In this document: piece by piece, positions 1 to 40,735 of the stretch
Position numbering within the stretch: the first letter of the stretch is position 1
Layout: each line of letters opens with the position of its first letter
NCBI GenBank assembly: GCA_004431415.1
Contig: QPMI01000371.1
Coordinates: 1 to 40,735 of the forward strand
From: Cyanophora paradoxa CCMP329
Lineage: Eukaryota > Plantae > Glaucophyta
Length of the DNA: 40,735 nucleotides
Direction of reading: 5' to 3'
Made by a program: the position numbers and the translations under genes
The notes under the pieces: generated by a model
Databases searched by the model: none
What the model saw: only the letters and a program-made list of their open reading frames with translations
Told to the model about the DNA's origin: nothing

Positions 1-758
1 GCCGCCCTCGACCATCACCGAGCGGGCGCCCCGGGCCCGCAGCCGCCCCAGAAGGTCCCCCAAGTCCACGCGCCCCTCCCCCGCCGCCCTGCACACCACC
101 ACCGACGCCCCCGCCGCCTCCAGCGCTTCCCTCCGCGCCCTCCACTCCCCCGCAGCGCCCGCCGACGGCTCTGGCCCCCGCCGTCAGGGCCCCCGCTCCG
201 ATCGGGGCCGGGCTCGGCACGAGCGCACCGACCGCGGCGAGCAGGGGCCGCCGGCACTTGGGAGAAGTGAGCAGGTTGCAGCTCAGCGGCGTGCGCAGCT
301 GCGAGTCCAGCACGACCGGCAGCGGGTTGTCGCCTGCGGGGCCGGGTTGGCGATGCGGGCGCCGGTTGAACTAGCGGCGCACCTTGCACGTGCCGAACGT
401 TGAGAGACGGGTTATCCGCAAGAAGAGTGCCTGAAGCAATTGCCGTCAGTCGAAGCTGCGTCACGTGGCTAAAGATCGGCCCGTCCCGCACCGATGCCGA
501 CCAGAATGGCGTCGTGCATGGCTCGCAGCGCGTGTGTCATGCGCATCGAGTCCGTCCCGCTCAAAATGAGCTGGGAGCCTGCGCACGCGCGAGCAGGCTG
601 AGCCAGGGCCAAGATCTAGATCGGCCGGCACCGCGCGCACCGGCCCTGGCAGAGATGCTGCCGTCCAGAGACTGCGCCCATGTCAGCGTGACGTGTGGCC
701 GCTCCGCATCCGCCGCCTCGGCGGCCCTTTGCTTCACGAAGCTGAGCACGTCGTCCAT
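1..758 (-). CDS. RIB7: RibD C-terminal-type pyrimidine reductase (RIB7-like, riboflavin biosynthesis); spliced, 3' end runs off the window
   Basis: ATG at 758. Spliced translation MDDVLSFVKQ...RPHVTLTWAQSLDGSISARA/GSQLILSGTDSMRMTHALRAMHDAILVGI/GTLLADNPSLNVRHVQ/GDNPLPVVLDSQLRTP matches the RibD_C motifs (AxSLDG, HxLRxxHDAILVGxGT, DNPxL, PxxVVLDS). Short GT-AG introns. Confidence 0.88.
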
Positions 759-984
759 TTTCGGGGCTCAGTCGTTCGAGCTCTCTTGCCCCCCCCCCCC
801 CCCGCTTTCGGGAGCAGCTGTCCTTTTCACTTCCATCGACATCCGTCAGCAAGCTAGCTGCACTGCTGCAGCAGCTGCAGCCCTTGGAGCGCTCGAAAGC
901 AACCCAGACATTCACCGCCGCCTCGGTTCTTGACGCATTGCGGCGAACCCAAAAACAGCTCGTCCGGAAGACAGCGGCGGCACG

Positions 985-3845
985 ATGAGCAAGAAGGAGA
1001 AGCTGGATATGACGCCGCAGGTGCGCGCATGCGCAATGCGTGCCTCCCGCGGCACCTGACGAGCTCTGCGTGTAGGAGATGGAGCGCTTCATGGAGTGCC
1101 TCAAGCAAGAGGAGTTCAGGAAGCTGCTCAACGACTACGCCAAGGAGATCTCCGATCCCGCTCACAAGGCGGTGTGTGCGCGTGCTGGCCGCGTCGCGTG
1201 CTCGACTGACGGCCTGCGCAGGAGTACGACGCGTACATTGAGCAGCTGGAGCGGGAGGCGAACGAGAACCCGGACAAGCGCGAACAGACGACGCTCATCA
1301 AGCCGGAGCCGGGCTTCGTGCTGAAGACGAAGAATGAGAAGACGGGGAAGAAGGTCTTCATCAACGTGTGCCACAGCTCGAAGATGGACACCGGCTCGGA
1401 GCAGAAGGTCAAGGGAGGCGCGCAGCTCAACTTCCCGTACGGCCTCGCCGGCCCTCGCGAGGCCAAGGACAACGGTGCCGGCTGTCCGCTGGCCGCCAGC
1501 CGCCCGCCTGCGCCGACGGGGGCGGCAGAGGGTGAGGTCGTGCCGGCGTGGGACGTGGTGTTCGGGACGGCGAACTACGAGCGGGCGGACGCGAACGCGC
1601 GCGTCAAGGAGCTCCTCATCGAGATGGCCCTCGAGGCCGTCGAGCGCCAGAGCGGCCACAAGCTCGCCAAGAGTGCGCCCCGCGCCCCGCGCGCCCTCCC
1701 CCGCCGCCGGCGCCGCGCCGCCCACGCCGGGGCGCCGGGCAGAGCCGAAGGTGATCAAGGGAACGTACCGGAGCGACCGGCCGGAGCCGGCCCTGCTCGC
1801 CGTCAAGAAGGAGGTCAAGGGCGGCGCCAAGAAGCCGGCGGCGGACCCCGGGCCGCCGCCCCCGCTCGAGGAGGCGCGCCCGAAGCCGGCGGCGGCGGCG
1901 GCGAAGGCGGCGCCGGTGCGGGACAAGCTGCAGGAGGAGGTCATGGCGATGCAGCGGGAGATGAAGGCGGCGGAGCGGGCCGCCAAGGGCCGCGCCCCGC
2001 AGCCGCCCCCGGCCCCCGCGGGCGGCCCCGAGCGCCCCAAGGTGGAGATCGTGGAGCGGGGCGTGATGGACGTCGGCGGGTTCCTGGAGTCGCAGGAGCG
2101 GGGCCGGGCGGCGCGGCCGCGGGAGCTGGCGGTGCGGATCTCGCTGCCGAAGAAGGCGGGGGCCGGGGACGTGGACCTGGACATCGAGGAGCGCGCCCTG
2201 ATTCTCGCCGACGCCGCCGGCCTCTACGCCCTCTCCATGCCCCTCCCCTACCCCGTCGACCCCGACGACGGCCACGCCAAGTTCGACACCAAGACGTGCC
2301 CCGCCCCGCCCCGCCCCGCCCCGCCGCCTCCGCGGGGCCCGATCCGCGCGCGGCAGCCGCGTGCTGGAGGTTGTGCTCCGCGTCCAGCCGCCCCCCAAGC
2401 CGGCGCCGGCCGCGCGGCCCCTCGTCGAGGAGATCCCCGAGGCGCGCCCCTGCCCCTCGCCCCGCCCCGCCCCGCGCAACCCGCGGCGACTGAGCGCCGC
2501 GCAGGCCGCCCCGCGCTCTCCGTGTCGCCCCCCGAGCGGGCCCCGGAGGCCGGCTCCCCAAGGGCGCCCCCGTCGCGGAGCCGGGGCGCCTGAGCCCCGA
2601 GCCGCGGGCCGGCAGGCGCCGGCCCCCGCCGGCGGCCTTCAGCGGGCGAACAGCGCGGTGCCGGGCTGGACGCAGGAGGCGGCGGCGGAGGCGGCGGCGA
2701 AGCACCCGCCGGCCCCATCGAGAGCGCGGGGATCCGTCTGGCGCGGGCCACGCAGGTGACCCCCGCGGGGAGGAGCCGGCGCCGGCGCGCGCGGAGCGGC
2801 GGCGAGGGAGCCTGAGCCCTGAGCCGGACGGGGAGGCCCCGCGGGGCCCCATCGCGACGGCGAACGGGGACCTGCCGGGCTGGAGGGCCGAGGACGCGGA
2901 GGCGGCGGCGGCGCGGCACCCGCCGGCCCCCATCGAGAGCGCGGGGATCACGCTGGCGCGGGCCACGCAGGTGACCCCGCCCGAGGGGGCGGCGGCGGCA
3001 GCGGGCCCCGAGGAGCGGCCGGCGCACAGCATGACGCAGTCTCACCTCAACGTGACGGTCCACATCGCCGCCCCCGCGGCCCCCGCCCCGGAGACCGTCC
3101 GAGCATTCTTCGCCCCCCGCAAGGTCCCCTCTCCCGCCCGGGGCGCGCGCCGGGGGCGGGGCGGGAACCGACGAGCGGGGCGCGCAGGCCGAGGTGCGGT
3201 TCGAGGCGGGGGGCCGGCGCTGGCGCCTGACCCTCGCCCTCGCCCACGACGTCCTCCCGGCCGCCTGCCGCCTCGCCCCGGCCCGCCGCCGCCCGCCGGC
3301 GCCCCGCCGCCGCCCTCCTCCTCGTCCTCCGCAAGGTGCCCGCCCCTCGCCGCCCCTCGTCCCGCGGGGCGCGAGCGAGCCGGCCGGCGGGCGTGCGCAG
3401 GCGGACGCGCACATCACGTGGGGCACGCTGGGCGCGCCCGAGGCGGGGCGTGGGAGGGGCGCCCACGGGGCCCCCGTGGTCGCCACCCTCGCCGGCTCCG
3501 CCCGCAACCCCGCCTACACCGCCCCGGCCCCGCACCCCGCCGCCCCCGCCCGGCCCTCCTCGCCCAAGCCCCCCGCCCCGCCCCCGCCTCCGCCGCTCCC
3601 GCCCGCCGCCCCCGCCTCGGCCGTCTCCTCTTCCGCCCCTGCCGCCCCGCCCCGCCCGCCCCGCCCCCGCTGCCCCTGCCGACCCAGCGCCGGGACCGGC
3701 GGGGCTGGGCGGGGCGAAGGCGGGGCCGGCGGGCAAGGGCTTCGACCCGAAGGCGGCGCTGGGGCTGCGGAGCGCCCCGGGGCCGGCGGCGGCGCCCCCG
3801 CGGCCCGTCAAGTTCACCAACACCCTCCTCACCGAGCTCGACTAG
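985..3845 (+). CDS. DNAAF2: Kintoun / dynein axonemal assembly factor 2 (PIH1 + CS domains); multi-exon
   Basis: Exon 1 985-1020 (MSKKEKLDMTPQ), intron 1021-1075, then EMERFMECLKQEEFRKLLNDYAKEISDP..EYDAYIEQLERE..IKPEPGFVLKT..KVFINVCHS (PIH1). CS domain RELAVRISLP..YALSMPLPYPVDPDDGHAKFD. C-terminus KFTNTLLTELD* resembles the kintoun FxNxLLxxLD end. The middle exons are uncertain because of likely homopolymer indels. Confidence 0.88.
2685..2978 (+). repeat. Internal ~80-nt direct repeat in DNAAF2 (copies ~2685-2763 and ~2896-2978)
   Basis: Both copies read gcggaggcggcggcg..cacccgccggcccc(c)atcgagagcgcggggatc..ctggcgcgggccacgcaggtgacccc and encode AEAAA.HPPAPIESAGI.LARATQVTP. Copy 1 lacks one C. 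Confidence 0.85.
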
Positions 3846-4326: not shown

Positions 4327-4349
4327 GAGAGAGAGAGAGAAAGAGAGAG
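4327..4349. repeat. (GA)n microsatellite in the convergent intergenic region
   Basis: gagagagagagagaaagagagag. Confidence 0.8.
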
Positions 4350-4414
4350 GCGTGCTCAAACTAGCCCTGAAATCGGAGGAGCAGGGGAGAGCGAGAGGGG
4401 TAGGAGTGAAAAGA

Positions 4415-7400
4415 CTACCTGCAGACTCGCGGCGGCTCCGGTCCGGCGGGGCCGGGTGCGACGGCGGGGGCCGGGGTCCAGGGGGGCTGCTGCGCGGTGT
4501 AGGGGTAGAGGTAGGCACCGCCGGGGGCGCTGACGAGGAGGGCGCCGGTGCCGGCGGGGCCCTGGAGGATGGCGAGGCCGGGGATGGGGGCCCCGGCCCC
4601 CTGGGGGCCCGGGAGGCCCCCCGGGAGGGCGAGGAGCTGGCGGTGGACGTCGGTGTGCGCCTCGAGCTGCTCCTGCCGCCGCCGCGCGTGCGCCGCGATC
4701 GCCCGCGACGTCACCGGCCCCCGCCCCGGCCCCGCCTCCCCCGGCCCACGCGGCTTGCCCCCGGCGGCGCCGGCCGGATCGCCCGCAGGCTGCTCCCCGC
4801 CTGCGGCCCACCCGCGGGGCCGCCGGGCCGGCCAGGGGCAGGGCGCCGGCGAGGGGCGCGGGGGCGGCGGCTGCAGGCGGGGGCGGCGAGCAGGGCGGGG
4901 CCGCGGGAGCGGCGTTGAGGGGCGCGGAACGAAGCGCTGCTGGCCCGCCCCGCCGCCATTGCCTGCTGCATCCACGCCGGCCCCGCCGGCCCCCCAGCCC
5001 CGCCCTCGCCCCACCACCAGCTGCACGCCCGGCGGCGCCGGCACCAGCACTCCAGGAGGCGGCGCGGCCAGCTGTGCGCCCGGCGGCGCCGGCCGCGGTA
5101 CGAGCTGCAAGCCCGGCGGGGTAGGTACCAGCTGCACACCGGGCGGCGCCGGCACCAGCTGCAGGCCCGACGGGCCGGCCAGCGCCTGCAACGGCGCCGG
5201 CGCCGGCGGCGCCCTGGGCGGAGCGGTCGGTACTGGTGCTGGCGGGGCGGAGCGGGCGGGCGGGAGCCTGGGGCGGTGGCGGGGCCGACGGGCGGGGGGC
5301 GAGCGGACGCGCTTCAGGGCGGGAGCCTCGGGGGGGCCAGCGCCGGCGCCGCGGGGGCGCCCCGGGGCACGGGTGCGTCGAAGGGCAACGGCAGCGCTGG
5401 CGGCAGCGGCGGCGCCGGCGGCAGCGGCGGGAACGATGAAGAGGTGGGGAGGCGCTTGGGCGGCCGCGGGGCGGGCGCGGGGGCGGGGCGGGGGCGGGGT
5501 GGGAGGAGGAGAGGGCGAGGGGACGGGAGGGCGGGGTCGGAGGTGAGGGGGGCGGGGCGGCGGGGGCGGGGCGGGCGGGCGTGCGGGGAGAGGCAGAGCG
5601 CATCGACGCCGCGCCGGGCGGCCGCGTTGCCCGGGTCCGAGGGCGCCGGCGAGGGCGCCGCGTGCGGCGAGAGCGCCTGCGAGGCCGCCGGCGACAGGTG
5701 CTCGAGGGAGGCCGGCGGGGAGGCCCCGGGCGACGTTCCCGAGTCGGGCGACGAGCAGCTCGGCGCCCGAGGCCCTCCGCGAAGCCCTCGAGCGCGGCGC
5801 CGCCCTCGGGCGCGGCGAGGGGCCCCAGGGGCGCCAGGGGCCGCAGGGGCCCGAGGGGCAGGGGGCCGATGGCCGGGATGGCGTCCAGCGTGGGGAGGTG
5901 CGGGAGGTGCGGCAGGGGCGCGAGGGTCGGGAGCGGGCCCAGGGCGTCCAGCGGGCCCAGGGAGCCGTCGAGCGCCCCGAACGTCTCCAGCGCCCACCGC
6001 GCCACCGCCTCCGCGTCCGGCTCGCCCTCGCCCTCCCCCGGCTCCGCCCACGACCCCTCCGGCTCCGGCGCGGGCGCATGTGGCTCGGGGGCGAGGAGCG
6101 GCGCTGGGGCCGGTGCCGGGGCCGGGGCTGGCTGGTGCTGGAGGTGGGGCGGCGGAGAGAGCTCCGGGGCGGCGAAGGAGCGCTTGCGCTTGCAGGCGGC
6201 GCTGGGGGCGGGGGCGTGGGGGAGCGGGGCGAGGGGCGGGCGGGGCGGGGCGAAGGGGCCCCAGGGGCGAGCGGCGTCCTCGGAGCCGCGGCGGCGGGAG
6301 ATGTAGAAGGAGCGCCAGGCGGCCACGATGCCCTCCACCTCGCGGTCGGCGAGCAGGCCCGCCCCCTCCGCCTCGCTCGCCAGCAGCTCCACGTACGCCC
6401 CGTCCTCGTCCTCCTCCAGCAGCGACGCCAGGCCCACGGGGCGCGCCGTCCCCGCCAGGCCCGCCGCCGCCTCCTCCACGCTCCACGCGCCCCCCGCCAC
6501 GTAGCGGCAGTAGTCGCTGAAGTACCGCACCAGCATCCGCGCTGCCGACCCGCCTCAGCCCCGGCCCCGCCCCCAGCGCGGGGGCCGGGAGGTGCCCGCA
6601 CTGAGGAAGCCGCGGAAGCCCTGCGGCTGCTTGTTGGGGAGCGGGAGGGCGCTCGGCGAGCCGGCGTACTCCATGAAGGTCGCTGCGCGGCGCGGCGCGG
6701 CGCGGCTCGACCGGCAGACGGCGGGCGCGCGGCGGGGACGGCGGCGGGCGCACTGAAAACGACGTCGCAGGCGCCCGCGCTGCTCTGTTGGGGTAGGAAC
6801 TGCCAGTCGCTGTGGCAGACCAGCCTGCGGGGCGTGAGGCCGGCCAGCGGGGCGGGCCGGGGCCGACGCACCCCAGGCTGTGCCAGGGGTTGGAGGGGTA
6901 CGGGAGACCGTGCTGGGGGGTCATGAAGGTTGTCGCCGTGACGCACGAGTCGTGGCACCAGGACTGTCCGCGGCGTCGGGGGCAGGGGCGGGGCGGGGCG
7001 GGGCAGGGCGGGCGGGGCGGACGAGATCGAGGGAGACGGAGCGGGTGCGGAGGAGTCCGGAGAAGGTGCGGTACGTGCGCTCCACCACCTGCCGCCCTCT
7101 CAGCGGCCTCGCGGCGCCCCGCGCGCCGCCGCCGCGCACCAGGAAGTCGCTCTCCAGGCCCTTCTGGAACTCGTCCAGCGCCAAGACGCTCACGCAGCCG
7201 CTGTGCCACTTGTTCTCGTGCCGTCGTAGTGCGTTGGCCAGCAGATCTGCCGCCGTGTTCAGCGGAGGGCGGCCCTAGCCGTGAGGCTCTATCCTAAAGG
7301 GTGGAGAAAGGAAAAGAAAAGATTCGAAAGCTAAAACATGGCGTAGGGATCGATGCTGCAGCGATGCTACGGCAGGCGGCGGAAGATATCCAACGTGAAA

Positions 7401-7852
7401 GCAGCGGCGGCGATGGTGGCAGCGAGGCTCATGAGAGACATGAGACTCGATTAGATGTGGATCTTATCGTGGTGTGTGCAAGAGCATTGAGGCGCCCGCA
7501 GCTCAAACGACCAAAGACCACGGCGGGCGGGGGCGATACCAAAGTTAACGCACCAACGCGAACGACGCCGGCCATCCACGGATCCGTAACAGTGAGGCCC
7601 TTCACGGAGCAGCGCAGAGCCATGGTCCCGTCGTCCAGAGTGCAGACCAGCGCGTGCACTCGGGGCCCGTCGTCGCACTTGGTCGGTACTGGCTGCTCGA
7701 GGATGCAAGTCGTTAGTTCAAAAGATCGCGAGCCAGAGCGAGCTCCGCACCAGCCATCCTCTGCCCTCCGCCTCGACCGCCCAAACCCTCATGGAGGCCG
7801 CCTTCACTTCTTGATACGCCTTCACCGACTTCCATCGTTCGGCGCGGTCCAT
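4415..7852 (-). CDS. Hypothetical protein; N-terminal globular region possibly START/SRPBCC-like, long Pro/Ala-rich C-terminus
   Basis: Spliced model MDRAERWKSVKAYQEVKAASMRVWAVEAEGRGWL/PVPTKCDDGPRVHALVCTLDDGTMALRCSVKGLTVTDPWMAGVVRV/DLLANALRRHENKWHSGCVSVLALDEF..VVERTYRTFSGLLRTRSVSLDL/SWCHDSCVTATTF../LVCHSDWQFLPQ..CDVVF/..FMEYAGS, with typical GTGCG/GTCCGC..CAG introns. The START resemblance is by eye only, and the stop is taken from ORF 4415..6958. Confidence 0.6.
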
Positions 7853-8070
7853 GCTGCTCGCCCGAGTGCCGGCGATCGGTGGGGACGGCCCCGACTAGCT
7901 AGGTCAGCATCCGAAGTTTTGATTCCGAACACTCGACTAGCTGCGGGAAATCCGCAGCTGCAAGCGCAGAGCGCGCCCTCCCGCTTGTCGACAGAGCGCT
8001 GTCGTCGTTTGTCGACTCTGTGGAGTCAGACTCAGAGTCAGTGACGAGTCTTGCGAGCTCGGAAATTTCG

Positions 8071-8106
8071 AAGGGGAAATCCTAAAGGAAGGGGAAATCC
8101 TAAAGG
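8071..8106. repeat. Perfect 18-nt tandem duplication (AAGGGGAAATCCTAAAGG x2) in a divergent spacer
   Basis: 8071-8088 is identical to 8089-8106. Confidence 0.9.
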
Positions 8107-8210
8107 AGGGGTAGGCCCGGATAGGGCTGTTCAGGCCAACAGCCGCACGCGCGGCAACCAACATCGACGCGCACTATGAGCTCAACCGCGCATTCGCATT
8201 GTGTCAGTCG

Positions 8211-9547
8211 ATGCCACTCGACTCGATGGCGCCGCACTCGCGCGATATCGATACGCCCGCGCCCCAGTGTGCAGTGTGCAAGGAGGCGATTCCGATCGTG
8301 AGCTTCTCGGACTTGCAGAGCGCGGACGCGCGGCAGCGTGTCGGGACGCAGCTCGTCGCGGCGCTGCGCGACGTCGGCTTCGCGTACATCTCCGGCGTCC
8401 GTGACTTTCTTGAGCCGGCGTGCGTTGAGCGCGTCTTCGACGCCTCGCGGCGGTTCTTCGAGCTGCCGCTGGAGGAGAAGGCGCTGTACCGCAGCGGCGC
8501 CATGCGCGGCTTCGAGGCCGTCGGCGCCGAGTCCCTCGCGGTCTACAGGTGCCGCCGGCTGCCTCGCGCCTTCAGCCTGCGGCGCGCGCGTCGGGTTAAC
8601 GCTGCGCAGGAAACCGGACGTGAAGGAGTCTTACACGCTGGGCGGGGAGCAGACGTACGGCGTGCCGCGCTGGGACGAGCGCTTCGGGGCGCGCAACGTG
8701 TGGCCGGGCGAGGGCGCCGTGCCGGGCTTCCGGGAGGCGGTGGAGGAGGCGCGGGCCGGGCTAGGGCGGCTCGCGGCGGAGGTGCTGCGCGCGTGCGCGC
8801 GCGGCGTTGGTCTGCCGGAGGACGTCTTCGCCGCTGCGCACCGTCGCCAGGACCATTGTGTGCCATCGCTGCTGCATATTGGAAGCGATCTGTGGTAACA
8901 AAAAGCGCAGCGTTCCGGCTGCTGCACTACCCCGCCGTGCGCGAGGATGAGCTCCTGCCCGGCCAGCGGCGCTGCGGCGAGCACACCGACTACGGTCCGC
9001 CTCTCCGCCCGCGCCGCCTCGCCGCGCCCTCACGCGCCGCCCCGCAGGGAGCATCACGCTGCTGCTGCAGGACGAGGCCGGCGGGCTGCAAGTCCGCACC
9101 CGCGCCGGCTGGCGCCACGTGCGGCCCATCCCCGGCACAGGTGCGCCGGCCGCCCGGCAGCGCGGCCTTGCAGCGGGGCCGGAGCACGCGCTGACTGCGG
9201 GCGGGGTGGGGGTGCAGTGGTTCTGAACTGCGGGGACCTGCTCGCCGCCTGGACAAACGAGCTCTTCTCGAGGTGCGCCGCAGCGCCCGCCCGACGGCTG
9301 CCCGCCCCGCCGACGAGCGCGCGGCGCCGCGCGCAGCACGCTGCACCGCGTGGGGGCGCCGCCGGCAGCACCCGGGGAGGGCCCGCGGGAGCGCTACTCG
9401 GTGGCGCTCTTCTGCAGCCCGGACCTGGACGCGACGGTGGAGCCGCTGCTGGCGGGGCCCGGGGGCCGGCCCCTCCACACCGCAACCACCACGGGGGACT
9501 ACCTCCTGACGCGCCTCACGTACACCGCCGCCTCCAGCGCCCGCTGA
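8211..9547 (+). CDS. 2-oxoglutarate/Fe(II)-dependent dioxygenase (IPNS/DIOX_N family); multi-exon
   Basis: IPIVSF..LVAALRDVGFAYISG..VFDASRRFFELPLEEK (DIOX_N), then FRLLHYP, HTDYG (HxD), ITLLLQDEAGGLQV, VVLNCGDLLAAWTN, STLHRV (distal His), RYSVALF (RxS). Start could be 8211 or 8226. Confidence 0.92.
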
Positions 9548-12558: not shown

Positions 12559-12658
12559 CGAGCGACGGGACTCGGCGTGTTTCTGTTGCACGGCCTCTGA
12601 GTCTCTACCCCGTTGGGCCTTGAACCCCCTTGGGTGACTGGGGGTACGGAGCACGAGC

Positions 12659-12676
12659 TTTGAAAGTTGGCGCGCC
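12659..12676 (+). promoter_or_regulatory. Candidate CHR-like (TTTGAA) plus E2F-like (TTGGCGCG) element upstream of POLD1
   Basis: TTTGAA at 12659-12664 and TTGGCGCG at 12667-12674, 65-80 nt upstream of the POLD1 ATG. Resembles the known cell-cycle elements, but the arrangement is not the canonical CDE-4nt-CHR. Confidence 0.35.
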
Positions 12677-12738
12677 GGGCCCTTCTCTCCTGCGGGCAGC
12701 TTTCTCTTGCAGGGAAGCAGTTCTAGCAGCGCAGCATA

Positions 12739-20986: not shown

Positions 20987-21024
<38 letters not shown>

Positions 21025-23038: not shown

Positions 23039-23817
23039 ATGCCGGATGTGATAATCGACATCGCATCGCTCGCTCTGAACCCCGGCAAGCTCGGCGCCGT
23101 CATAGGCTCTATCCTCGACGCAAACGTGCGCCCTGCTGGTTGTGAACTCTGAGCGCCCCTTGACGGCGCCCCTTGTGAACTCAGTGGGACGCGTCGACCC
23201 AAACAACCGACATTTGTTCTGTAGCAGCTACGGAATGCGACGAGAACGCTCTTCCGTGCTGCTTCTGTCGGGCGGGCCGTGCGCGGCTGCCGCCGCAGCG
23301 GCGGGCTACGGAGGCGCTCCCTGTGCACCAGAGCGGATTTAGGCCTCGCTTCGGTCTGGAGTACTTCCAGTGCGTCCCTCCGCTCGCTGCAGCGTCCCTC
23401 CGCTCGCTGCAGCAGGCTCCCGGCCTCACTCCGCTGCCCAGCTGCCTGGCTTGCGGGCACTGCCTCCCGATGGGGAGCCTGGAGCACGACTGTTCGCGGG
23501 GCGCGATCGACAGCTTCTGCGCGGAATGCGACGGGGGTGATCTCTTCACGGAGGAGGGGCGGCTCGTGCAGCCCGGCGGAGATGGACCGGGACCTCCAGG
23601 CCGCCAGGTGAGTGAATTGACTAGTCGTAGTCAATTCACCTCTATATCGTGGTGCTTTCGCGGTGAGGTCGGGGATGTGCGGCGCGCTCGGCCGCTCACG
23701 GGTGGGGCGGCGGGAGCAGGGTTCGCGCGGCGGAGCGGCATCTGCCCGACGTGCTGGTCCGAGGCGCACGCCCTGGGGCCCGCCGAGTGCGACGCCCTCC
23801 CCCCGCCCCACTCCTAG
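23039..23817 (+). CDS. Small hypothetical Cys-rich (putative Zn-binding) protein; 3' exon structure uncertain
   Basis: Exon 23039-23125 (MPDVIIDIASLALNPGKLGAVIGSILDAN), intron 23126-23184 (GTGCGC..CAG) joining in frame to ORF 23323..23817, intron 23370-23441. Motifs CCFC, CLACGHC, CAEC, CPTC. Confidence 0.5.
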
Positions 23818-23950
23818 CCCCGCCCGAATGGCGTGCGCTGCGACGTGCACCGGCCGCGTGCGCGCGCGTGCAGCACCAGCTGAAGTAGGCAGAAGATCTG
23901 GCGAAACACGGCGAGACCATACAGATAGCACTAGTTGGGCAGCAGGAGAG

Positions 23951-24020
23951 CAGTTTCTGTAGCTATAGTTTAGGTAGCTAGACTCGATGCAGGTGTCAGT
24001 TTCTGTAGCTGTAGTCTAGG
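23951..24020. repeat. Imperfect 24-nt direct repeat in the convergent intergenic region
   Basis: CAGTTTCTGTAGCTATAGTTTAGG (23951-23974) vs CAGTTTCTGTAGCTGTAGTCTAGG (23997-24020). Confidence 0.8.
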
Positions 24021-24070
24021 ATATCTCCCAGGACGGGGCGGCGAGCGGAGGGAAGAAGGCGGCTCGGGGG

Positions 24071-26144: not shown

Positions 26145-26366
26145 ATTTGGGAGGCGGTTCAGCGGCGATTGCAGAGGCCTAGAGGGGCTGCGGCTTGGCG
26201 GGTAGTGCGAAGTTCGGGCAAGAGCTGGGGGATACGCGATTTCGGGAGGCAAACGGCAAAGATGCCGCGCATCACCGGCGCCGATTCGCACGCGTAGTAT
26301 TCATTTTAGGTTTAGTCCCTTCACTCTTGCAATCCCCAGCTCGGCGTGCGACGAGCGGCGGTGGCC

Positions 26367-31392: not shown

Positions 31393-31614
31393 TACTCTGC
31401 TGTGCCAGCGCCGCTGACTGTAGCTGCCGCTTGCTGGCTTCACGCGTTGGCTCAAATGGGAGGTCCGCGCTCTAATTTGCTCACTCGGTGCGTTTGTCTA
31501 CCCCGGTCGTCTAAAGAGCCTCTACCCCCTTCACGTCTGAGCGAGATGCTTATGTTGCGAGGCCTGGAACGATCCAGGCGATAGCGCCCGAGCCGGGAGC
31601 ACGACGAATCAGAG

Positions 31615-34600
31615 ATGGCGCGGCCCCCGCCAGCCGCGGCGGTGGTGCTACTTTTCCTCGTGTTCGGCGCTGTTGTGGTCGAAGTCACGGAGGCGATGTC
31701 GATCCGAGAGCGCATACGATTGCGGTGCGTTGTTCGGTCTGCCGCTAGCGCTCCGGGGCGCTCCCGCTGTCATCATCGAGCTTTGGCCTGCCGCCGCCCT
31801 CGCTGTCATCTTCGGGCTTCGCTGACCGGTTCTGCAGAGAGGAGGTGCGGCGGATGTTTTATCACGGCTACGAAGGCTACCTGAAGTACGCCTTCCCTGC
31901 GGACGAGCTCGCGCCGGTCTCCTGCAGCGGTGCGTGCGCCCGGGCGCGTCAGCGCTTGCCGAGGGCGCCCCCGGCTCACCCCGCGGGCGGCAGGCATCAA
32001 CAACTTCGGCGGCTACGCGCTGACGCTGATCGACGCGCTGGACACGCTGATGGCGCGTCCGGGGCCGCCCCTGCAATCCCCGCGCGCGGGGGGGGGTCGA
32101 GTCGCGCGCCCGGGCCGCTGAGCGGGGCGCACGGGCGGGGCGCAGGTGCTGGGCAACGCCACGGAGTTCGGGCGGGCGGTGGGGGTCGTGCTGAGCCGCT
32201 TCCACGACTTTGACATCGACGCAAACGTCTCGGTCTTCGAGACGAATATCCGGATCCTGGGCGGCCTCCTCTCCTCCCACCTCCTCGCCATCCGCTACGT
32301 TCCCGTGAGCCCGTCGCCCCTCCTCCTCCTCCCCCCCCCCCCCCCCCCCTCCCCGCTTGAGGCGGAGGGGGGCGGCAGGGGTACGGGGGCGGGCTGCTGG
32401 AGCTGGCGCGGGACCTGGGCCACCGGCTGCTGTGGGCCTTCCAGACGCCGACCCTCATCCCCTACGGCACCGTCAACCTCAGGCGCCCCGCCCCGGCCCC
32501 CGGCCCCGCGAGGCGTCTGACCCGCCCGGGCAGGTACGGGGTGCCGCCTGGGGAGACCCCCGTGGCCTCCCTCGCCGGCGCCGGCACCTTCGCCCTCGGT
32601 GCCCCCGCGTCTCTCCCGCGGCCCGCGGGGGCCCCGCTGACGCGCCGGCGCGCGGCAGAGTTCGGGCTGCTCTCGCGGCTCACGGGGGACCCCCGCTTCG
32701 AGGCGGCCGCCCGGGGCGCCCTCCGCGGCCTCTTCCGCCGCCGCTCCCCGCTCGGCCTCTTCGGCATGCACATCGACGCCCTCAGCGGTCCGCCCCTGCT
32801 CTGCATCGCCGCGCCCCGCCCCCGCCGCGCCCGCCCGACGGGCCGGGCAGGGGAGTGGACGCAGAAGGAGGCGGGGATCGGGGCGGGGGCGGACTCGTTC
32901 TACGAGTACCTCTACAAGGGGTACCTGCTCTTCGAGGACCGGGAGTACCTGTGGATGTTCGGCGAGGCGTACGCGGCGGTGCTGCGCCACCTCAAGAAGG
33001 ACGCCTGGTACGTCGACGCCAACATGTACTCCGGCCAGATCGTCTGGTGCCCCGCCCCGCCCGCCCCGCTCCGCATCTTTGCTGAAGGCGGGCTGGGGCG
33101 CGGGGGCGCAGGCCGATCTTCAACAGCCTGCAGGCGTTCTGGCCGGGGCTGCAGGCGCTGTACGGGGACGTCTCGGCGGCGGCGGAGACGCACTACGCCT
33201 TCCACTGGGTCTGGCGCAAGTACATCGGCATCCCCGAGGGCTGGAACCTCCACTCCCAGCAGGCCCAGGCCGGCCAGAAGCGCTACCCGCTGCGCCCCGA
33301 GCTCGCCGAGTCGGCGTTCTACCTGCACGCGGCGACGGGGCGGGGCCGGTACCTGTACGTGGGGCGGGACATGGTGCGGAGCCTGCAGCACTTCACGCGG
33401 ACGCCGTGCGGGCACGCGGAGGTGGACGACGTGGAGACGGGGGCCCTGGCCGACGCCCAGGCCTCCTTCTTCCTCTCCGAGACCTGCAAGGCCCGCCCCC
33501 CCCGCCCCGCCCCGCCCCGCCCTCCTGCCCCCAGCTGGGGCTGACCCCCCCGCAGTACCTGTACCTGCTGTTCGACCCGGAGCCCGGGACGCTGGGGAAG
33601 CGGGGCGTCGTCTTCACGACGGAGGGTCACCTCGTGCCCCTCGACTACAACGCCACCATCCCCTACACCTGGACCGCCTGGGAGACCCAGCCCCAGCCCG
33701 GGCCCCCGGCTCATTTTGAGGACGGGGCCCTCCCCGCCTCGGCCCCGGCCGCGGGCCCCCACAACGAAACGGCGCCGGCCGTCGACCCGCTCACGGGCAG
33801 GCCAGCGGTGGCGGGGGCGGGCGGGGCAGGGCGTCGGCGGCGGCGGGCGGCGCGGGTGTCGGGGCTGAGGCGGCAGCCGGTGGAGGTGGACTTTGCGCGG
33901 CAGTGCCCCGCCCTGCCGCCCCACGAGCGGCCCCTCTACAGCCGCTCCGACGCCCCGCCCGCCCTCCACTCCGAGCCCCCCGCCGTTGCAGGCAGCGGAG
34001 GCGGCAGCAGCGGCAGAGGCAGCAGCGACGATGGCAGCAGCGGCGGAGGCAGCAGCGGCGGTGGTGGGGTCGGCATCGGCAGCGATGCCAGCAACGGCGG
34101 TGGCAGAAGCAGCAGCAGCAGCAGCAGCGGGGATTTTTTTGAAGGGGGCGGGGGCGAGTGGGAGGAGGTGGAGGTGGATCTCGAGGACGGGGGGTGGGGC
34201 CCCGGGGATGAGGAGGAGGAGGGGAGGAGGCGGGGCTGGACTGGGAGCTGGAGGCGAGCGTCGAGTCCGACGCCCTCGTGCGCGCCCCGCGCCCGGCCCG
34301 CTGCCGCCGCCTTCGCCGCGTCCTCCGACGCCGGCGGGGCGCGGGGGCGGCAGGTGGTGGCGGCGGAGGTGGACGCGCTGGTGGCCGCGCAGGAGCGGCG
34401 CGGGCGCGACGAGCGCGTCTTCCAGCACGTCGCCGCCGCCGCCCTCAACGCCGCCGCCGCCAACGCCAAGGGCTCCGTCCGCCCCGCGCCCCCCTTGGCT
34501 CCTCTCGGCCCGCGCTGAGGCCGGCCGCGCGGGGCCGCGCGCGCAGGTGCAAATCGTGGTGCAGGGACCCGACGGGCGCGTCTCCCAGATCACCGTCCCC

Positions 34601-35140
34601 GCCCCGCAAGCCGGCAAGGAGCTCCCCGGCGAGGCCGGCCCGGCCCCGGCGGGGCGGGGCGGCGGGGAGGGGGCGGAGGCGGCGGCGGCGGCGGCGGCGG
34701 TGCAGGGGCTGGTGGCGGCGGGGCAGGGCGGGGGCCCGGGGCACGCGCAGGAGATGCAGATGGTGCAGGCCATCATGAACTTCCTCCAGAAGCAGTTCCA
34801 GCCCGCCCCGCACGCCCCCGCCGCCCCCGCCGGCGAGGGCGGGCCCCCGCAAGGGCCCCCCGACCCCGCGCCATCGGAGGAGGCAACGGCGGAGGCAGCG
34901 GCCTCCGAAGCGGCGGCGGAGGCGGCGGAGGCGGCAGGGGAGGCCGGGGCGGCGGGGGCAGCGGGTGGGGGCGGGGCGGGGCGGGGCGAGGCGCCCATCT
35001 CGGCGGAGATCAACGAGCCGTGGCCGGAGGAGGCGGAGGAGGCGGACGAGGCCGGCGGCTGGGTCGACGCCGAGGCCCTCGCCAGGAGGCCCGCCCACGA
35101 GGAGGCGCCCCCGCCCCCCGGGCCCGCCGGCCAGCCCTGA
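31615..35140 (+). CDS. EDEM2: GH47 alpha-1,2-mannosidase, EDEM2/plant MNS4-like (ERAD), with signal peptide and low-complexity C-terminal extension
   Basis: Hydrophobic N-terminus, then [117 protein letters not shown]. Confidence 0.92.
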
Positions 35141-35505
35141 TCATGACCCCCGCGCCACCCTCTGCGGCCGCCGATATCGATCCCGCATTGTTTCTCGTCC
35201 ATTTTTCCTGGGGTACACGCGTAGGGGCCCTTGGTCATGATCACTTCTCTCTTTCACAGTGTAACAGCTGCAGTGTGTCAGTGTAGTGTGAGAGTTTTTG
35301 AAGCGAGCTTGAAGGAGGGAATTCAATGACTCAGTGATTTGAATTGAAGCGATCGCGAGTAGCTATAGAAGTCTGAAGCGAGCCCGATGGCCATGGCGAG
35401 CACAGCCTTTCTAAGTTCATTTTGCCAAGTTGCAAGGATCATCGGATCCTTGCAAATGAATAGAATTCGCCGAGTCGAAAAGCCTTGAAACTTTTGAGAG
35501 GCCGC

Positions 35506-35550
35506 GGCCTCAGGGCCTCAGGGCCTCAGGGCCTCAGGGTCTCAGGGCCT
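35506..35550. repeat. (GGCCTCAG) x5.6 tandem repeat
   Basis: ggcctcag ggcctcag ggcctcag ggcctcag ggtctcag ggcct. Confidence 0.9.
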
Positions 35551-36110
35551 GATCATGAAGTTCATGATCACGGATTGGAACCTGGAATTTTAAAGTGGAT
35601 GGGCCCCTGTTCAGCCCTTCCGAGTTCTTCGGAAGCCTTGATCGACTCGGCAGTGAATTCGAAGGGCCTTTTGAGCTTCGGAAGAGGCCCGAGGCCTTGC
35701 ACTTGATGCTCCTTCCGAGTTCCGAAGTTCTTTGGAAACTACGGTCCGAGGGCACTGCGGCATAATTGATCATTCTTCTTCGGTTGATCATTCAAGGGCC
35801 CGAGGGGACTCTGACCACGATTGTGATCGGCCTCATGATCCGATGATCAGTGCCCGTTAAATTTTGAACCTTTCGAGTTTGTGACCCGCCACTGGGCCAA
35901 TTGTGTGAGGAGGGGCCCCGGGCCCATTTTGACCGGGGGACCCCGGGCCCAGCTGCAGGCCCTTCCGACGCCCTCAAGTAACGGGAGAGTTACGGGATCG
36001 CGGGCCGCCAGGCTAGAGGGTCAAGCTGATTTCCTTACTTACACTACACAGGCGTGGGTGCCCGCACGCATTGAAACTACAGGACTACGTAAACTCCACG
36101 CGGCGGTGGC

Positions 36111-39100
36111 CTAGCGGCTGCGGCGGAGGGCGTCGTAGGCTGCGCCGTCGAGGGGCACGAAGTGCGGGTCCGAGTCGAGGACGATCTCCCGCTTCAGCCG
36201 CTCCCAGTCTGCCCGGTGGTCCTGAGGGGCCGTCAGAGAAGCTGATGGGAGGCGGCGGGGGTGGGCGGGGCGCACCCTGGCCTCGGCGGAGAAGCAGCGG
36301 GCGGCGGTGGCGGACTCGCGGCGGAGGCGGGCGAGCTCGCGGCGCAGGGCCTCCACCTCGGCCCCGCACGCGCGCTGCTGCTCGCGGTAGAGCTCCCGGT
36401 ACATCCCCGCCTCGCTCGCCGCCGCCGCCCAGCACCGCTCCTGGCCCTGCCCCGCGTCAGGCGCGCGTCAGGCGCGCCGGGGCCGGCGGCGGGGGCGGGG
36501 CGGGGCGGACGGCGGCGGCGGCGGAGGCGGCCTCGTGGCGGGCGAGGAGCGACTCGTGCTCGCCCCTGAGGGCCTCCAGCGCCCGCCCGCCTCCTCCGCC
36601 CCGCCCGCAGCGCCCCCGCCTCCCGCTCGAACGCCCTGCGCCCCCGGCCTCGGCGGCGGCCCGACGCATGCACGGAGGGGAGGGGCGCCCGCACCGGCTC
36701 TGCTCCTCGAGCGCCGCCTCCGCCGCCGACCGCAGCGCGGCCGCCCGCCACGCGCCCACCGCCCGCGCCGCGCGGAGCCGCTCGGAGCGCTGCGGGGCGG
36801 GTGAGGGGCGCGGGCGGGCGCGGGGGGCCGGCGGGGCGCACGGCGGCGAAGAGGAGCGCGGCGGCGCGCAGGAGGCGCTCGCGGCCGGCGCGGGAGCGGA
36901 GGGCGGCGAAGGCGGCGGCGGCGCGGCGGCGGGCGGCGGCGGCGGCGGCGAGGCCGGCGAGGCGCTCGGCGAGGGCGTCGCCGCGGGCGGCGGCGCGGGC
37001 GGCGGCGTCCGACGCGGCGAGGGCGCCGAGGCGCGCCTCCTCGAGCTCCGCCGTCGCCGCCTCGCTCGCCCCCCGCAGCCGCTCCGCCCGCGCCTCCGCC
37101 GCCCCGCACGCCTCCTGCGGCACGCGGGCCGTCAGCGGGGGCGAGGGGCGGGGAGGGGGGCGGGAGGGGCGGACGGCGGCGCGGGCGGCCTCCTCCTCGG
37201 CGGCGTCGAGGCGGGCGCGGAGCTCGCCGGCGGCGCCCTCGACCGCCTCCCGCCGCCCCCGCTCCTCCGCCGCCTCCCGCTCGCACCGCTCCGCCACGCC
37301 CCGGGCCGCCTCCGCCTCGGCGCGCGCCGCCTCGAGCTCGGCGCGGGCCTCGAGGGCGACCGCCTCGGCGGCGGCGGCGCGCCGGTCGGCGGCGGAGAGG
37401 GCGGCGGCGGCGTTGCGGAGGGAGAGCTCGCGCGCCGCCAGCTCGCCGCGCAGCAGGCGCGCCTCCCCGCCGCCTCCTCGAGGGCCGCCCGCGCCGCCGC
37501 CTCCGAGCAGCGGAGGGCGCCGATGGCGGCCTCGGCGGCGGTGGCGGCGCCCTCGGCGGTGGCGGCGCGGGTGCGGGCGGCGAGGGCGGAGCAGTCGGAG
37601 ACGACGGCGCGGCGCTGCGACGAGGCGGCGCGCTCCCGCAGCTCCTCCACCTCCAGCAGCTCCGCCTCCGCCTCCCCGGCCCGCCGCCCCGCCTCCGCCG
37701 CCTCCCGCGCGCCGCCTCCAGCTCCGCCTCCAGCGCTCCGCACCGCTCCTCCGCCCCCGCCGCCGCCTCCCGCGCCTCCTCCAGCTCTGCCCGGACCGCC
37801 TCGAGCTCCGCCTCCGCGGCGGCTCGCAGCTCCGCCTCCGCGGCTGCCGCCGAGCGGGCCTCGATCAGGGCGATCTCGGCGTCTTCCCGCTCGCGCCGCG
37901 GTCCCGCCAGCGCCTCCGCCCGCTCCGCCGCCCGCTTCGTCTCCCGCTCCGCGTCGGCCGCCCGCCTCTCCGCCGCCGCCGCCGCGTCGGCCGCCGCCTC
38001 GGCCTGCTCCCTTGCAGCCTCCAGCTCTGCCTCCATTGCGGCCGCGTCGCCCCGGGCGGCCCGCAGCTCGGACGAGAGGGCCTCGGCGCGGGCGGCCGCC
38101 GCCTGGGCCTCCGCGCGAGCCGCCTCGAGCTCCGCCTCGAGGGAGGCGCGTCGCTCCGCGTCCGCAGCGGCAGCCACCCACGTGGCGTCGGCGTCGGATT
38201 TGGCCAAAGCGAGTTCCTCCTCGGCGCGATCGGCACGCTCCGCGGCCGCCTCCAGCTCCCCCTCGAGCGAGGCGCACCGCGCCGCCGCCTCGGCCGCCGC
38301 CGCGCGCGCCAGCTCCAGCTCCTGCTCCGCCCGCTCGGCCACCGCCTGGAAGCCCTCCCGCGCCGCCTCGAGCTCCGCCTCCGCGGCGGCTCGCAGCTCC
38401 GCTTCCGCGGCCGCCGCCGAGCGAGCTTCCTCGGCCCGCGCGACGGCCTCCTCGAGCTCGCGCCTCAGGCCCGCCAGCGTCGCCTCCGCGATTCCGGACG
38501 CCTCCGCCGCCCGCCGCGCCTCGAGCTCCGCCTCTGCCGCGCGCCCTTCCGCGTCCGCGCACCTCTGATGCACCGCCGCGAGCTCCGCCTCGAGCTCGGC
38601 GAGGCGCCCCTCGGCCCGCTCCGCCCGCTCCTCCGCTGCCGCCGCCGCGAGCTCCTCCCGCGCCGCGTCGGCCTCGGCCCTGGCGGCCTCGAGCTCGGCC
38701 TCGGCGGCCTCGCGCATCTCGGCCTCGGCGGCGGCGACGGTGCGCGCCTCGACGAGGGCCGCCTCCGCCTCGGCCGCCCGCTCCACCGCCCGCCGCGTTT
38801 CCGCCTCCGCCTCGGCCGCCCGCCGCTCCGCCGCCGCCGCGTGCTCGGCGGCGGCCTCGAGGGCGGCGGCCTCGGCGGTTCGCTCGCGGAGCAGGGCCGC
38901 CTCGAGCTCGCGCTGCAGCGCCGCCCCCGCCCGCTCGGCCTCCGCAGGCGGCCCTCCAGCCGCCCCCGCTCCTCCAGCGCCCCGCCAGCGCCCCTGCCGC
39001 CTCCCCGCGCGCCTCGGCAGCCGCCTCGCCGCCCGCAGCCGCTCCTCCTCGAGCGCCGCACGCGCCTCCGCCGCCTCCCGCCGCGCCTCCTCGGCGGCCT

Positions 39101-40735
39101 CCTCCAGCGCCGCCCGCTCACCGGCGGCGGCCGCGAGGTGCGCGGCGGCCTCGGCGGCGCGGGCCTCGGCCTCGCACAGGCGCCCGGCGAGCTCCTCGCG
39201 CGCCGCGTGCGCTGCCCGCAGCTCCGCCTCCAGCGCCGCCCGGCCCCGCCCGCGGCAGCGGCCTCGGCGCGGGCCTCTTCGGCGGCGTCGAGCGCCTCGG
39301 CCGCCTCCTGCGCGGCCGCACGCCGCCGCTCCTCCGCCGCAGCCCGCGCCCGCTCCGTCTCCCGCAGCTGCCCCGCCCGCCGCCCCGCCTCCGCCTCCGT
39401 CGCCTCGAGCTGCCGGCGGGCCTCGGCGGCCTCCTCGGCGGCGGCCTGGGCGGCGGCGCGGGCGGCGCGGAGCTCGGCGTCGAGGGCGGCGCGGGCGCGG
39501 CGGGCCTCGAGGGCGCCGGCCTCGGCCGCCTCGAGGCGGGCGCGAGCTCGTCCGCCTCGCGCGCCGCCCGCGCCGCGCCCTCGCCGCGCTCCTCCGCGAG
39601 CCGCGCCCGCGCCTCAGCGAGGCCGCGCTCGAGCTCGCCGAGGCGCCGCTGGAGCCGCGCCGCCTCGCCCCGCGCCTCCTCCTCCTCGCCCCGCGCCGCA
39701 CGCAGCGCCGCCTCCAGCTCCCCGCGCTGCGCCCCGGCCCCGCGTGAGGCGAATGGGGGATCGGGGCGCGCGCATGTAATCCGGTGCACCTTGCGCTCGG
39801 AGTCGGCGAACTTGGCGCGCAGCTCGGCGAGGCAGGCCGCTAGCCGCTCGCCCTCCGCCCGCGCCGCCCCGGCCTCCGCGCTCGCCTCCGCCGCCCGCTC
39901 CTCCGCCTCGCCGCCGGCGCGGCGCGCCTCCTCGAGGGCGCGGCGCGCCTCGCGCAGGCCCCGGCGCGCCGCCTCGAGCTCCTGCCCCAGCGCCGCCGCC
40001 TTCTCCGCCGCCGCGTTGCCCTCCTCCCGCGCCTCGTGCAGCTCCGCCGCCAGCGCCGCACCCGCGCCGCCGACGCCACCGCCCGCTCCGCCGCCGCGGC
40101 CGCCTCGCTCCGGGCCGCCTGGAGCTCAGCGGCCACTGTCGCCGCAGCGTCGGCACGGGCGGCCCGCAGCTCCGACGCGAGGGCCTCCCGCGGGCCGCCG
40201 CCGCCTCGGCCTCCGCGCGAGCCGCCTCGAGCTCCGCCTCGAGGGAGGCGCGTCGCTCCGCTCCGGCCAACGCCGCCGCGCGGACCGCCTCGGCCTCGGA
40301 CGCCTTCGCCGCGAGCTCCTCCCGCGTCGCCTCCAGCTCCGCCTCCACTGCTGCCGCGCCGGCCCGGGCCGCCCGCAGCTCGGACGAGAGAGCGTCAACC
40401 TCTGCAGCCGCCGCCTCGGCCTCCCCGCGAGCCGCCTCGAGCTCCGTCTCGGCGGAGGCGCGTCGCTCGGCCTCCGCAGCGGCAGCCGCCCGCACGGCGT
40501 CGGCGTCGGATTCGGCCGCCGCAAGTCGCTCCTCGGCGTGATCGGCCCGCTCCGCAGCCGCCTCCAGCTCCGCCTCGAGCGAGGCGCACCGCGCCGCCGC
40601 CTCGGCCGCCGCCGCCCGCGCCAGCTCCAGCTCGTGCTCCGCGCGCTCGGCGACCGCCTGGAAGCCCTCCCGCGCCGCCTCGAGCTCCGCCTCCGCGGCC
40701 GCCCGCAGCTCCGCCTCTGCGGCCGCCGCCGAGCG
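36111..40735 (-). CDS. Long Ala/Glu/Arg-rich coiled-coil protein with internal repeats; 5' end outside the window
   Basis: Recurrent AEAELRAAAEAELEAAR and ERRASLEAELEAAR units. C-terminal exons MYRELYREQQRACG..CFSAEAR/DHRADWERLKREIVLDSDPHFVPLDGAAYDALRRSR*. Several apparent frameshifts. Confidence 0.75.
38040..40735 (-). repeat. Large internal duplication in the coiled-coil gene (~38040-38422 vs ~40350-40735)
   Basis: Near-identical blocks, e.g. cctcgagcgaggcgcaccgcgccgccgcctcggccgccgccgc..accgcctggaagccctcccgcgccgcctcgagctccgcctccgcggc in both. Confidence 0.85.

Follow-up and report, generated by a model that had tools for sequence, protein, structure and literature searches.

A run of 15 strictly alternating genes in a 41-kb window of nuclear DNA from Cyanophora paradoxa: a probable local example of the opposite-strand neighbor excess of compact genomes

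The stretch of DNA analyzed here, a window of ~41 kb on nuclear contig tig00001545 (QPMI01000371.1) of Cyanophora paradoxa, contains 15 protein-coding genes (Table 1), the strands of which read - + - + - + - + - + - + - + - along the window. Every one of the 14 steps between neighbors is a switch of strand (14/14), and same-strand (tandem) pairs number 0. A preliminary description made from the letters alone had proposed such a strictly alternating set of 15 genes, and codon statistics, Pfam, spliced RNA and a published model bear it out. Strands were called from codon log-likelihood combined with a two-strand exon-chaining gene finder; from Pfam matches to single exons (g1, g2, g4, g6, g7, g8, g9 and g14); from RNA contigs spliced at GT..AG or CT..AC joints (g9, g10 and g12); and from a published 908-amino-acid model (g3). 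Searches with spliced models took one exon at a time, and the RNA check covered 21800-27700 only (5.9 kb), with unstranded contigs whose depth is unfit to rank genes.

Table 1. Genes of the window and selected spacers between head-to-head starts. All positions are window coordinates.
Feature	Position	Strand	Basis or remarks
g1, RIB7/RibD_C-like reductase	<1-758, ATG 758	-	Cut by window start
g2, PIH1 + PIH1_CS (DNAAF2/Kintoun-like), ~10 exons	985-3845	+	Pfam, gene finder
g3, hypothetical, 908 aa	4418-7852	-	Equals published model tig00001545_g9334.t1
g4, 2-oxoglutarate/Fe(II) dioxygenase	8226-9547	+	DIOX_N 5.6e-15; gene finder 70 vs 3
g5, low-complexity Ala/Pro/Lys-rich protein	9739-11946	-	Codon-LLR blocks on minus strand only
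g6, POLD1 (DNA polymerase delta catalytic subunit), ~19 exons	12805-17200	+	Pfam, gene finder
g7, RPC11/POLR3K-type small RNA polymerase subunit, 2 exons, 110 aa	17828-18208	-	
g8, ENT-domain protein	18443 to ~19380 (3' end approximate)	+	End set by small gene-finder exons
g9, CFAP97/Hemingway-like with IQ motif	CDS 19768-22280	-	First exon starts right of 22789
g10, Cys-rich, 215 aa, 3 exons	RNA ~22877-24100, CDS 23039-23817	+	RNA joints
g11, C2-domain-like	24071-26144, ATG 26144	-	Minus-strand codon blocks
g12, hypothetical	RNA from 26243, ATG 26367 or 26409, end 28824	+	RNA, codon LLR
g13, SHIPPO-repeat-like (PGPxY repeats)	28974-31392	-	Gene finder 201 vs 8
g14, glycosyl hydrolase family 47 (EDEM/ER mannosidase-like), ~13 exons	31854-35140	+	
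g15, long Ala/Glu/Arg/Leu coiled-coil protein	36111 to beyond 40735	-	Leaves window end
Spacer g1/g2	759-984		226 bp, GC 0.62; GC trough 793-1402
Spacer g3/g4	7853-8225		373 bp; GC trough 7243-8250
Spacer g7/g8	18209-18442		234 bp
Spacer g13/g14	31393-31853		461 bp; GC trough 31441-31552

The left half of the window combines genes with clear domain matches and genes identified by other means. For g1, three minus-strand exon open reading frames (ORFs) match parts 1-23, 21-54 and 111-139 of the RibD_C profile, with E-values of 0.024, 0.013 and 0.0041 that are weak singly, but the matches are collinear. The g2 protein carries PIH1 (5.6e-14) and PIH1_CS (1.3e-13), and its gene-finder score is 330, with the opposite strand at ~1. 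For g3, the exon at 5754-6539 was used in an exhaustive HMMER search, which returned one protein, 100% identical (EP00741_Cyanophora_paradoxa_P009636 / tig00001545_g9334.t1), and tblastn with this published protein places residues 1-34 at 7852-7751 and the end at 4418, all on the minus strand. No Pfam match was found for g5, which scores 124-134 in the gene finder against 10 on the other strand. POLD1 is supported by DNA_pol_B (4e-43), DNA_pol_B_exo1 (1.3e-16) and a gene-finder score of 725, and the small subunit encoded by g7 by Zn_ribbon_TFIIS (1.6e-19) and Zn_ribbon_RPB9 (2.7e-6). In g8, codon bias is weak and the ENT match (2.1e-11) lies on the ORF at 18422-18757.

Spliced RNA contributes to the calls in the middle of the window. 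The minus-strand g9, with Pfam matches to Hmw_CFAP97 (1.2e-6) and IQ (3.2e-5) and a gene-finder score of 474 versus 41-49, has CT..AC joints at 21899/21965, 22114/22169, 22283/22340, 22362/22604 and 22648/22789, so that its 5' untranslated region (UTR) contains three introns and exons extending to at least 22789. The weakest link of the alternation, g10, a plus-strand gene between two minus-strand genes and lacking a Pfam match, is transcribed and spliced on the plus strand: RNA contigs from three runs begin at 22877-22891, GT..AG joints occur at 23125/23185 and 23369/23442, and by local translation the ORF is open across both introns. No Pfam match was found for g11 either, and its 5' part has no RNA contigs; it scores 73-76 in the gene finder versus 9-10, and an atlas feature search placed it with C2 clusters at 0.94 (28/30 matches). 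Support for g12 comes from a GT..AG joint in RNA contigs that span 26243-27002 and 27055-27593, from a codon LLR of 146 for 26998-27591 and from a gene-finder score of 162 versus 20-24. Further right, g13 lacks a Pfam match and falls with SHIPPO-rpt clusters at 0.95 in the atlas search (30/30 matches), g14 matches Glyco_hydro_47 (4.4e-15; gene finder 313 versus 5.5), and g15, with weak coiled-coil Pfam matches only, scores 611 on the minus strand versus 230-245 on the plus strand and contains internal 300-nt repeats of 82% identity.

No missed same-strand gene emerged from a search of the gaps by tRNA, Rfam, codon bias, Pfam or GC troughs. There are no detected tRNA genes or Rfam families in the window, and the long ORFs of the spacers have neither codon bias nor a Pfam match. 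Two such ORFs were rejected as hidden genes on these grounds, one at 12007-12744 on the minus strand and one at 7301-8044 on the plus strand, the latter also overlapping the opposite-strand 5' exons of g3. Large inverted duplications were excluded as a source of the alternation. Of the compositional markers, GC skew was dropped because its sign in g15 follows amino acid composition and not strand, and strict donor and acceptor patterns, counted on each strand, failed to separate the two; C-rich (CCCCG)n tracts favor the sense strand in g2, g3, g5, g6, g11, g12, g13 and g14. GC troughs match 12 of the 14 proposed gene boundaries. Away from boundaries, low GC is found in coding exons of RIB7 and POLD1 and in one 8-bp dip in g14, and no internal trough was seen in g2, g3, g5, g9, g11, g12, g13 or g15. 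That g2, g13 and g15 are each single genes is judged from reading-frame continuity and this lack of an internal trough.

The alternation yields the seven divergent pairs that had been proposed, g1/g2, g3/g4, g5/g6, g7/g8, g9/g10, g11/g12 and g13/g14, with ATG-to-ATG distances of 226, 373, 858, 234, 758, 222 and 461 bp, respectively. In one published definition, pairs count as bidirectional when at most 1,000 bp separate their start sites (PMC2648788), and by ATG distance all seven fit it, these distances being upper bounds if UTRs do not overlap. Transcript 5' ends were seen, in unstranded contigs, for three genes only (g9, g10 and g12), and those of g9 and g10 lie within ~90 bp or less of each other. 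The start spacers have a GC content of 0.60-0.66, compared to ~0.8 in gene bodies. A k-mer search for a motif common to the seven spacers gave nothing specific, and a scan for bacterial promoters and terminators, irrelevant to this nuclear DNA, was empty. The proposal that head-to-head partners are functionally unrelated holds within the window. The further suggestion, that the genome is made of obligate bidirectional units with a promoter for each pair, is supported in part and for the window only: the gene starts do face each other across short, AT-richer spacers, and the k-mer search gave no specific motif common to these. Obligate pairing across the genome would go beyond what the window shows.

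Between the pairs, genes meet tail to tail, with stop-to-stop distances of 149-970 bp across seven spacers; the stops of g4 and g5, for instance, are 191 bp apart. Continuous RNA contigs (23599-24315) cross the spacer between g10 and g11, and the end spacers contain practically no AATAAA, ATTAAA or TGTAA. The genome paper describes Cyanophora genes as "often oriented end-to-end" and presents a convergent glgX/glycogenin pair with 3' UTR in common (PMC6704402). The window is similar to that pair in its stop-to-stop gaps of 149-253 bp and in the RNA contig over the g10/g11 gap, although the genome paper offers examples and a phrase, without orientation counts, alternation or shared promoters.

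Comparison with other genomes places these features in context. Bidirectional pairs of humans, Arabidopsis and fungi likewise have starts less than 1 kb apart (here measured by ATG) and partners that are often functionally unrelated, but there they are a minority amid tandem neighbors, whereas in the Cyanophora window every gene is paired and also has its 3' end opposite that of another gene. An excess of opposite-strand neighbors was reportedly noted in Ectocarpus by Cock et al. in 2010. In brown algae, more than 60% of adjacent pairs are on opposite strands, a feature described as typical of compact genomes (10.1101/2024.02.19.579948). Ectocarpus and other brown algae resemble the window in the tendency of neighboring genes to lie on opposite strands and in short divergent spacers, yet theirs is a genome-wide tendency given as "greater than 60%," whereas the Cyanophora figure is 14/14 in a single window; brown algal genomes are also far less gene dense than that of Cyanophora. 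The preliminary description knew of no account of strict alternation. The opposite-strand excess is in fact already published, for compact genomes and brown algae, but we too found no description of strict alternation.

How much weight the run can bear depends on how it was found. Under random orientation, 14 switches out of 14 have a probability of (1/2)^14 = 6.1e-5, and the figure of about 6e-5 put forward earlier is correct arithmetic for one window but ignores the ~1,623 windows of this genome that were surveyed. Among these, perfect windows are expected to number 0.1, 3.9 or 29 if the switch fraction, q, is 0.5, 0.65 or 0.75, respectively. If the window is taken without selection, the switch fraction has a lower bound of 0.81 (one-sided, 95%), and with a fraction of 85-90%, 1/10 to 1/4 of 15-gene windows would be perfect. 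Because so many windows were surveyed, one perfect run among them is only modest evidence for orientation bias. It is improbable, and slightly more so than any other explanation weighed here, that orientation is simply random (switch fraction ~0.5) and that the survey picked out an extreme tail. Extremes do get noticed when windows are this numerous, ~250,000 overall, but only ~0.1 such window is expected in the genome at q = 0.5, and a nonrandom layout is indicated by spacers that are short throughout and by published remarks on genes lying end to end and sharing UTRs (PMC6704402).

An improbable alternative of another kind is that the alternation is an artifact of modeling, with at least one junction hiding a tandem pair, whether through a small gene or through g2, g13 or g15 being split. 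The RNA check, spanning only 5.9 kb, leaves room for this, and POLD1, named evm.model.tig00001545.7 in an independent EVM annotation (10.1101/674762), is model 7 on the contig but the sixth gene in the window. One additional upstream model may therefore exist, left of the window or within its first 12.8 kb; the former may be the case because the window cuts RIB7. Word-indexed, length-limited protein searches with ORFs of g9, g13 and g14 recovered no homologues and not even the proteins of the window itself, and our models may therefore deviate from the published ones. In the g2 model, the stretch between 2522 and 2810 has to be either an intron of 289 nt or the site of a low-scoring exon. Nevertheless, frame 2 is open at 2357-2755 and phase compatible with the exon at 2811, and an internal duplication of ~220 bp (2590-2765 versus 2812-2970) covers the doubtful stretch, which at the level of sequence favors reading g2 as one gene. 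Also speaking against an artifact are the long genes, which lack an internal GC trough, stop-plus-ATG structure and opposite-strand coding signal; the annotation of g3 as a single gene; and the spacer ORFs without codon bias or Pfam match. At the other extreme, alternation could be rule-like in this organism, with at least 85% of neighbors on opposite strands genome-wide and a near-unbroken chain of shared start islands and end spacers. The 14/14 switches, with the lower bound of 0.81 if the window is treated as unselected, the shortness of every spacer and the phrase in the genome paper (PMC6704402) all point this way. Still, we consider it unlikely, as the highest published figure found is "greater than 60%" (10.1101/2024.02.19.579948).

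We favor, with a probability of about 0.6, the reading that the run is a strong local case of the opposite-strand neighbor excess known from compact genomes, an excess that is possibly stronger than usual in Cyanophora. From each start island (222-858 bp, GC ~0.62), two genes would leave back to back, and each island is most likely one nucleosome-free, inherently bidirectional promoter region. At each end spacer (149-970 bp), two genes would finish face to face, their 3' UTRs probably abutting or overlapping. A tandem junction, by comparison, would need a terminator and a protected promoter within one spacer. The published mean intergenic distance in the C. paradoxa genome is 770 bp, and with such tight packing selection presumably disfavors tandem junctions, or they are just less common; it is this disfavoring of tandem junctions in a packed genome that makes a strong local case of the known excess the most likely account of the run. 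What the window shows is the gene models with their strands, the sizes of the spacers and that g10 is transcribed and spliced; promoter sharing, the selective reason for the layout and any genome-wide bias are what we infer.

If the bias proves modest, the window is a neat example of compact-genome layout. If a switch fraction of at least 85% holds genome-wide, it would be far above the ~60% of brown algae, with promoters used both ways as a rule and termination normally taking place between converging genes. A strong genome-wide bias would also affect annotation, as a same-strand neighbor would become suspect in a very GC-rich genome in which antisense "shadow" ORFs are common. Cyanophora would then be the clearest natural case in which to study how inherently bidirectional promoters come to yield two productive genes, how closely converging genes terminate, and whether the exonic small RNAs described for this alga arise in part from 3' ends that overlap.

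Strict strand alternation of the 15 genes (g1 to g15, left to right), as claimed in the preliminary description, is borne out by codon statistics, an exon-chaining gene finder, Pfam, RNA, and a published model of g3, and the most doubtful link, g10, is backed by RNA. GC content is 58-85% per kb, with exon third codon positions near 100% GC and many short introns. A codon log-likelihood table, self-trained on windows whose GC1/GC2/GC3 pattern was as expected, was used to segment all six frames. The gene finder required an ATG, GT..AG introns of 40-450 nt, and a stop, and was run on each strand separately, without and then with splice-site matrices. The two approaches agree on the blocks, and model-strand scores are well above those of the opposite strand (see table). 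Pfam was searched with single exons or exon-bearing open reading frames (ORFs), not joined models.

Gene models, scores on the model strand and the opposite strand, and Pfam matches, with examples of C-rich tracts
Feature	Position	Strand	Score	Best opposite-strand score	Pfam match
g1, RIB7-like (truncated)		-			RibD_C (three weak matches, collinear)
g2, DNAAF2-like	985-3845	+	330	about 1	PIH1, PIH1_CS
g3, hypothetical	4415-6674 (extended by published model)	-	103	none predicted	
g4, 2OG dioxygenase	8226-9547	+	70	3	DIOX_N
g5, low-complexity	9739-11946	-	124	10	
g6, POLD1	12805-17200	+	725	22	DNA_pol_B, DNA_pol_B_exo1
g7, RPC11/POLR3K-type	17828-18208	-	47	none predicted	both zinc ribbons of RPC11-type subunit
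g8, ENT		+			ENT
g9, CFAP97-like	19768-22280	-	474	41-49	Hmw_CFAP97, IQ
g11, C2-like	24071-25599	-	73	9-10	
g12, hypothetical	26409-28824	+	162	20-24	
g13, SHIPPO-like	28974-31392	-	201	8	
g14, GH47/EDEM	31854-35140	+	313	5.5	Glyco_hydro_47
g15, coiled coil	36111-40735	-	611	230-245	
(CCCCG)n tracts	2299-2321, 14305-14329, 15815-15852, 16577-16604, 17061-17095, 27600-28037, many more				

The strand and 5' end of g3 are settled by the published 908-aa model, which spans 4418-7852 on the minus strand and starts at an ATG at 7852. The names "C2" (g11) and "SHIPPO" (g13) drew no Pfam match, but leads from a language-model feature search, placing g11 exons among C2 clusters (0.94) and g13 exons among SHIPPO-repeat clusters (0.95), agree with them. 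In POLD1, an intron is predicted at 13466-13537 by the finder, which takes GT..AG only, and exon borders around 13449-13517 are tentative. Among the 15 genes, three or four are cilium related, namely, a PIH1/DNAAF2-like dynein assembly factor (g2), a CFAP97-like gene with IQ (g9), a SHIPPO-repeat gene (g13), and perhaps the long coiled coil (g15); none is paired with another of its kind.

One exon is 100% identical to EukProt EP00741_Cyanophora_paradoxa_P009636, named tig00001545_g9334.t1, which places the window on tig00001545, a contig of the 2019 assembly. An expression-atlas preprint (10.1101/674762) lists DNA polymerase delta as evm.model.tig00001545.7, and here POLD1 is the sixth gene. 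Because RIB7 is truncated by the window edge, the contig extends leftward, and the extra EVM model may lie there; alternatively, it could be a split or an added model somewhere in the first 12.8 kb.

The critical link is g10, which lies between two minus-strand genes, g9 and g11, has almost no codon bias, and was missed by the gene finder; were it not real, its neighbors would be tandem. Contigs from four runs, two of them clearly RNA because spliced joints are present, were examined over 21800-27700 (5.9 kb). On the minus strand, g9 has CT..AC introns within its coding sequence at 21899/21965 and 22114/22169, and three further RNA-supported introns in its 5' untranslated region (UTR), at 22283/22340, 22362/22604, and 22648/22789 (56, 241, and 140 nt), so that its first exon begins to the right of 22789. 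This exon starts beside the point where g10 begins on the other strand. Contigs of three runs form a second group, which starts at 22877-22891 and has GT..AG introns at 23125/23185 and 23369/23442, which indicates plus-strand origin, and local translation gives an open 215-aa Cys-rich frame at 23039-23817 across both introns. The proposed plus-strand Cys-rich gene is thus real. Contigs also run unbroken over 23599-24315, from the g10 coding sequence across the 253-bp stop-to-stop gap as far as the final exon of g11, so the converging 3' ends abut or overlap. The RNA of g12 (+) starts at 26243 and has a GT..AG intron independently predicted by the gene finder; no unexplained transcript was seen in the RNA-checked 5.9 kb.

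Searches for tRNAs, Rfam families, spacer ORFs, and GC troughs revealed no hidden same-strand gene. The window has no tRNA and no Rfam family at gathering score, and the longest spacer ORFs, at 7301-8044 (+), 12007-12744 (-), and several in 35150-36100, have neither codon bias nor a Pfam match; that at 7301-8044 also lies antisense over 5' exons of g3. In a fine GC profile, 12 of the 14 proposed gene boundaries coincide with a trough below 0.62, the other two being the tightest tail-to-tail spacers (191 and 149 bp). The remaining troughs mark coding exons of low GC in RIB7 and POLD1 and an 8-bp dip in g14, and none is internal to the long genes g2, g3, g13, and g15. The doubtful stretch of g2 (2296-2811) is open in frame over 2357-2755, phase-compatible with the next exon, and bridged by a tandem duplication of ~220 bp (2590-2765 versus 2812-2970). 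The first copy has a C run that differs by 1 nt, which puts the repeated peptide (…HPPAP IESAGI…) in another frame; the repeat may be genuinely frameshifted, or the long-read assembly may contain a homopolymer error here. In g15, 300-nt repeats of 82% identity, 2.3 kb apart (37973-38272 and 40285-40584), and weaker copies are as expected of one long coiled-coil gene and point to recent internal duplication.

A partly independent strand marker is provided by (CCCCG)n tracts, seven times commoner than in shuffles; the word CCCCGCCC, mostly within them, occurs 169 times versus 23 expected. Largely in predicted introns, the tracts favor the sense strand of the gene that holds them (for example, POLD1, 18:2; g12, 13:3), following it in eight genes and never clearly opposing a model. 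They resemble a C-rich version of the polypyrimidine tract.

Whether the run reflects chance, bias, or a rule depends on how many windows are considered. The probability put forward earlier, (1/2)^14 or 6.1e-5, holds for one randomly oriented window, but about 1,623 windows of the genome were read. Over that number, 0.1 perfect windows are expected if the switch fraction (share of neighbors on opposite strands) is 0.5, which counts against random orientation roughly tenfold, and the figure rises to 1.3 at 0.6, 3.9 at 0.65, 29 at 0.75, and 370 at 0.9. The 14/14 run, from one window, therefore fits a modest bias as well as a rule. As for novelty, no description of strict alternation was found in the searchable literature, but this kind of layout is already known. 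A brown algal study reports a strong tendency toward opposite-strand adjacent genes (10.1101/2024.02.19.579948), and the Cyanophora paradoxa genome paper describes many genes with overlapping UTRs and shows one convergent pair, with no orientation counts (PMC6704402). Among 64 eukaryotes surveyed, most showed random gene orientation, and in some it was less random.

The head-to-head spacers, or start islands, measure 226, 373, 858, 234, 758, 222, and 461 bp from ATG to ATG, with GC of 0.60-0.66, and no motif common to all seven was found; within the 758-bp island, the g9 and g10 RNAs start about 90 bp apart or less. Three are of near-equal length (759-984, 226 bp; 18209-18442, 234 bp; 26145-26366, 222 bp), a size that would fit little beyond one nucleosome-free region and very short 5' UTRs. 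The tail-to-tail spacers measure 569, 191, 627, about 388, 253, 149, and 970 bp from stop to stop. GC falls to its lowest level in the window (0.44-0.55) in the longest of these (35141-36110), which lacks coding signal and Pfam matches and may be a decayed insertion.

A compact-genome layout is the most likely mechanism; the sharing of promoters, a selective reason for the layout, and its extent across the genome are all inferred. Each start island would be bidirectional and common to two genes, and each end spacer common to two converging genes, with tandem junctions disfavored because a terminator and an insulated promoter would have to fit into a few hundred bases.
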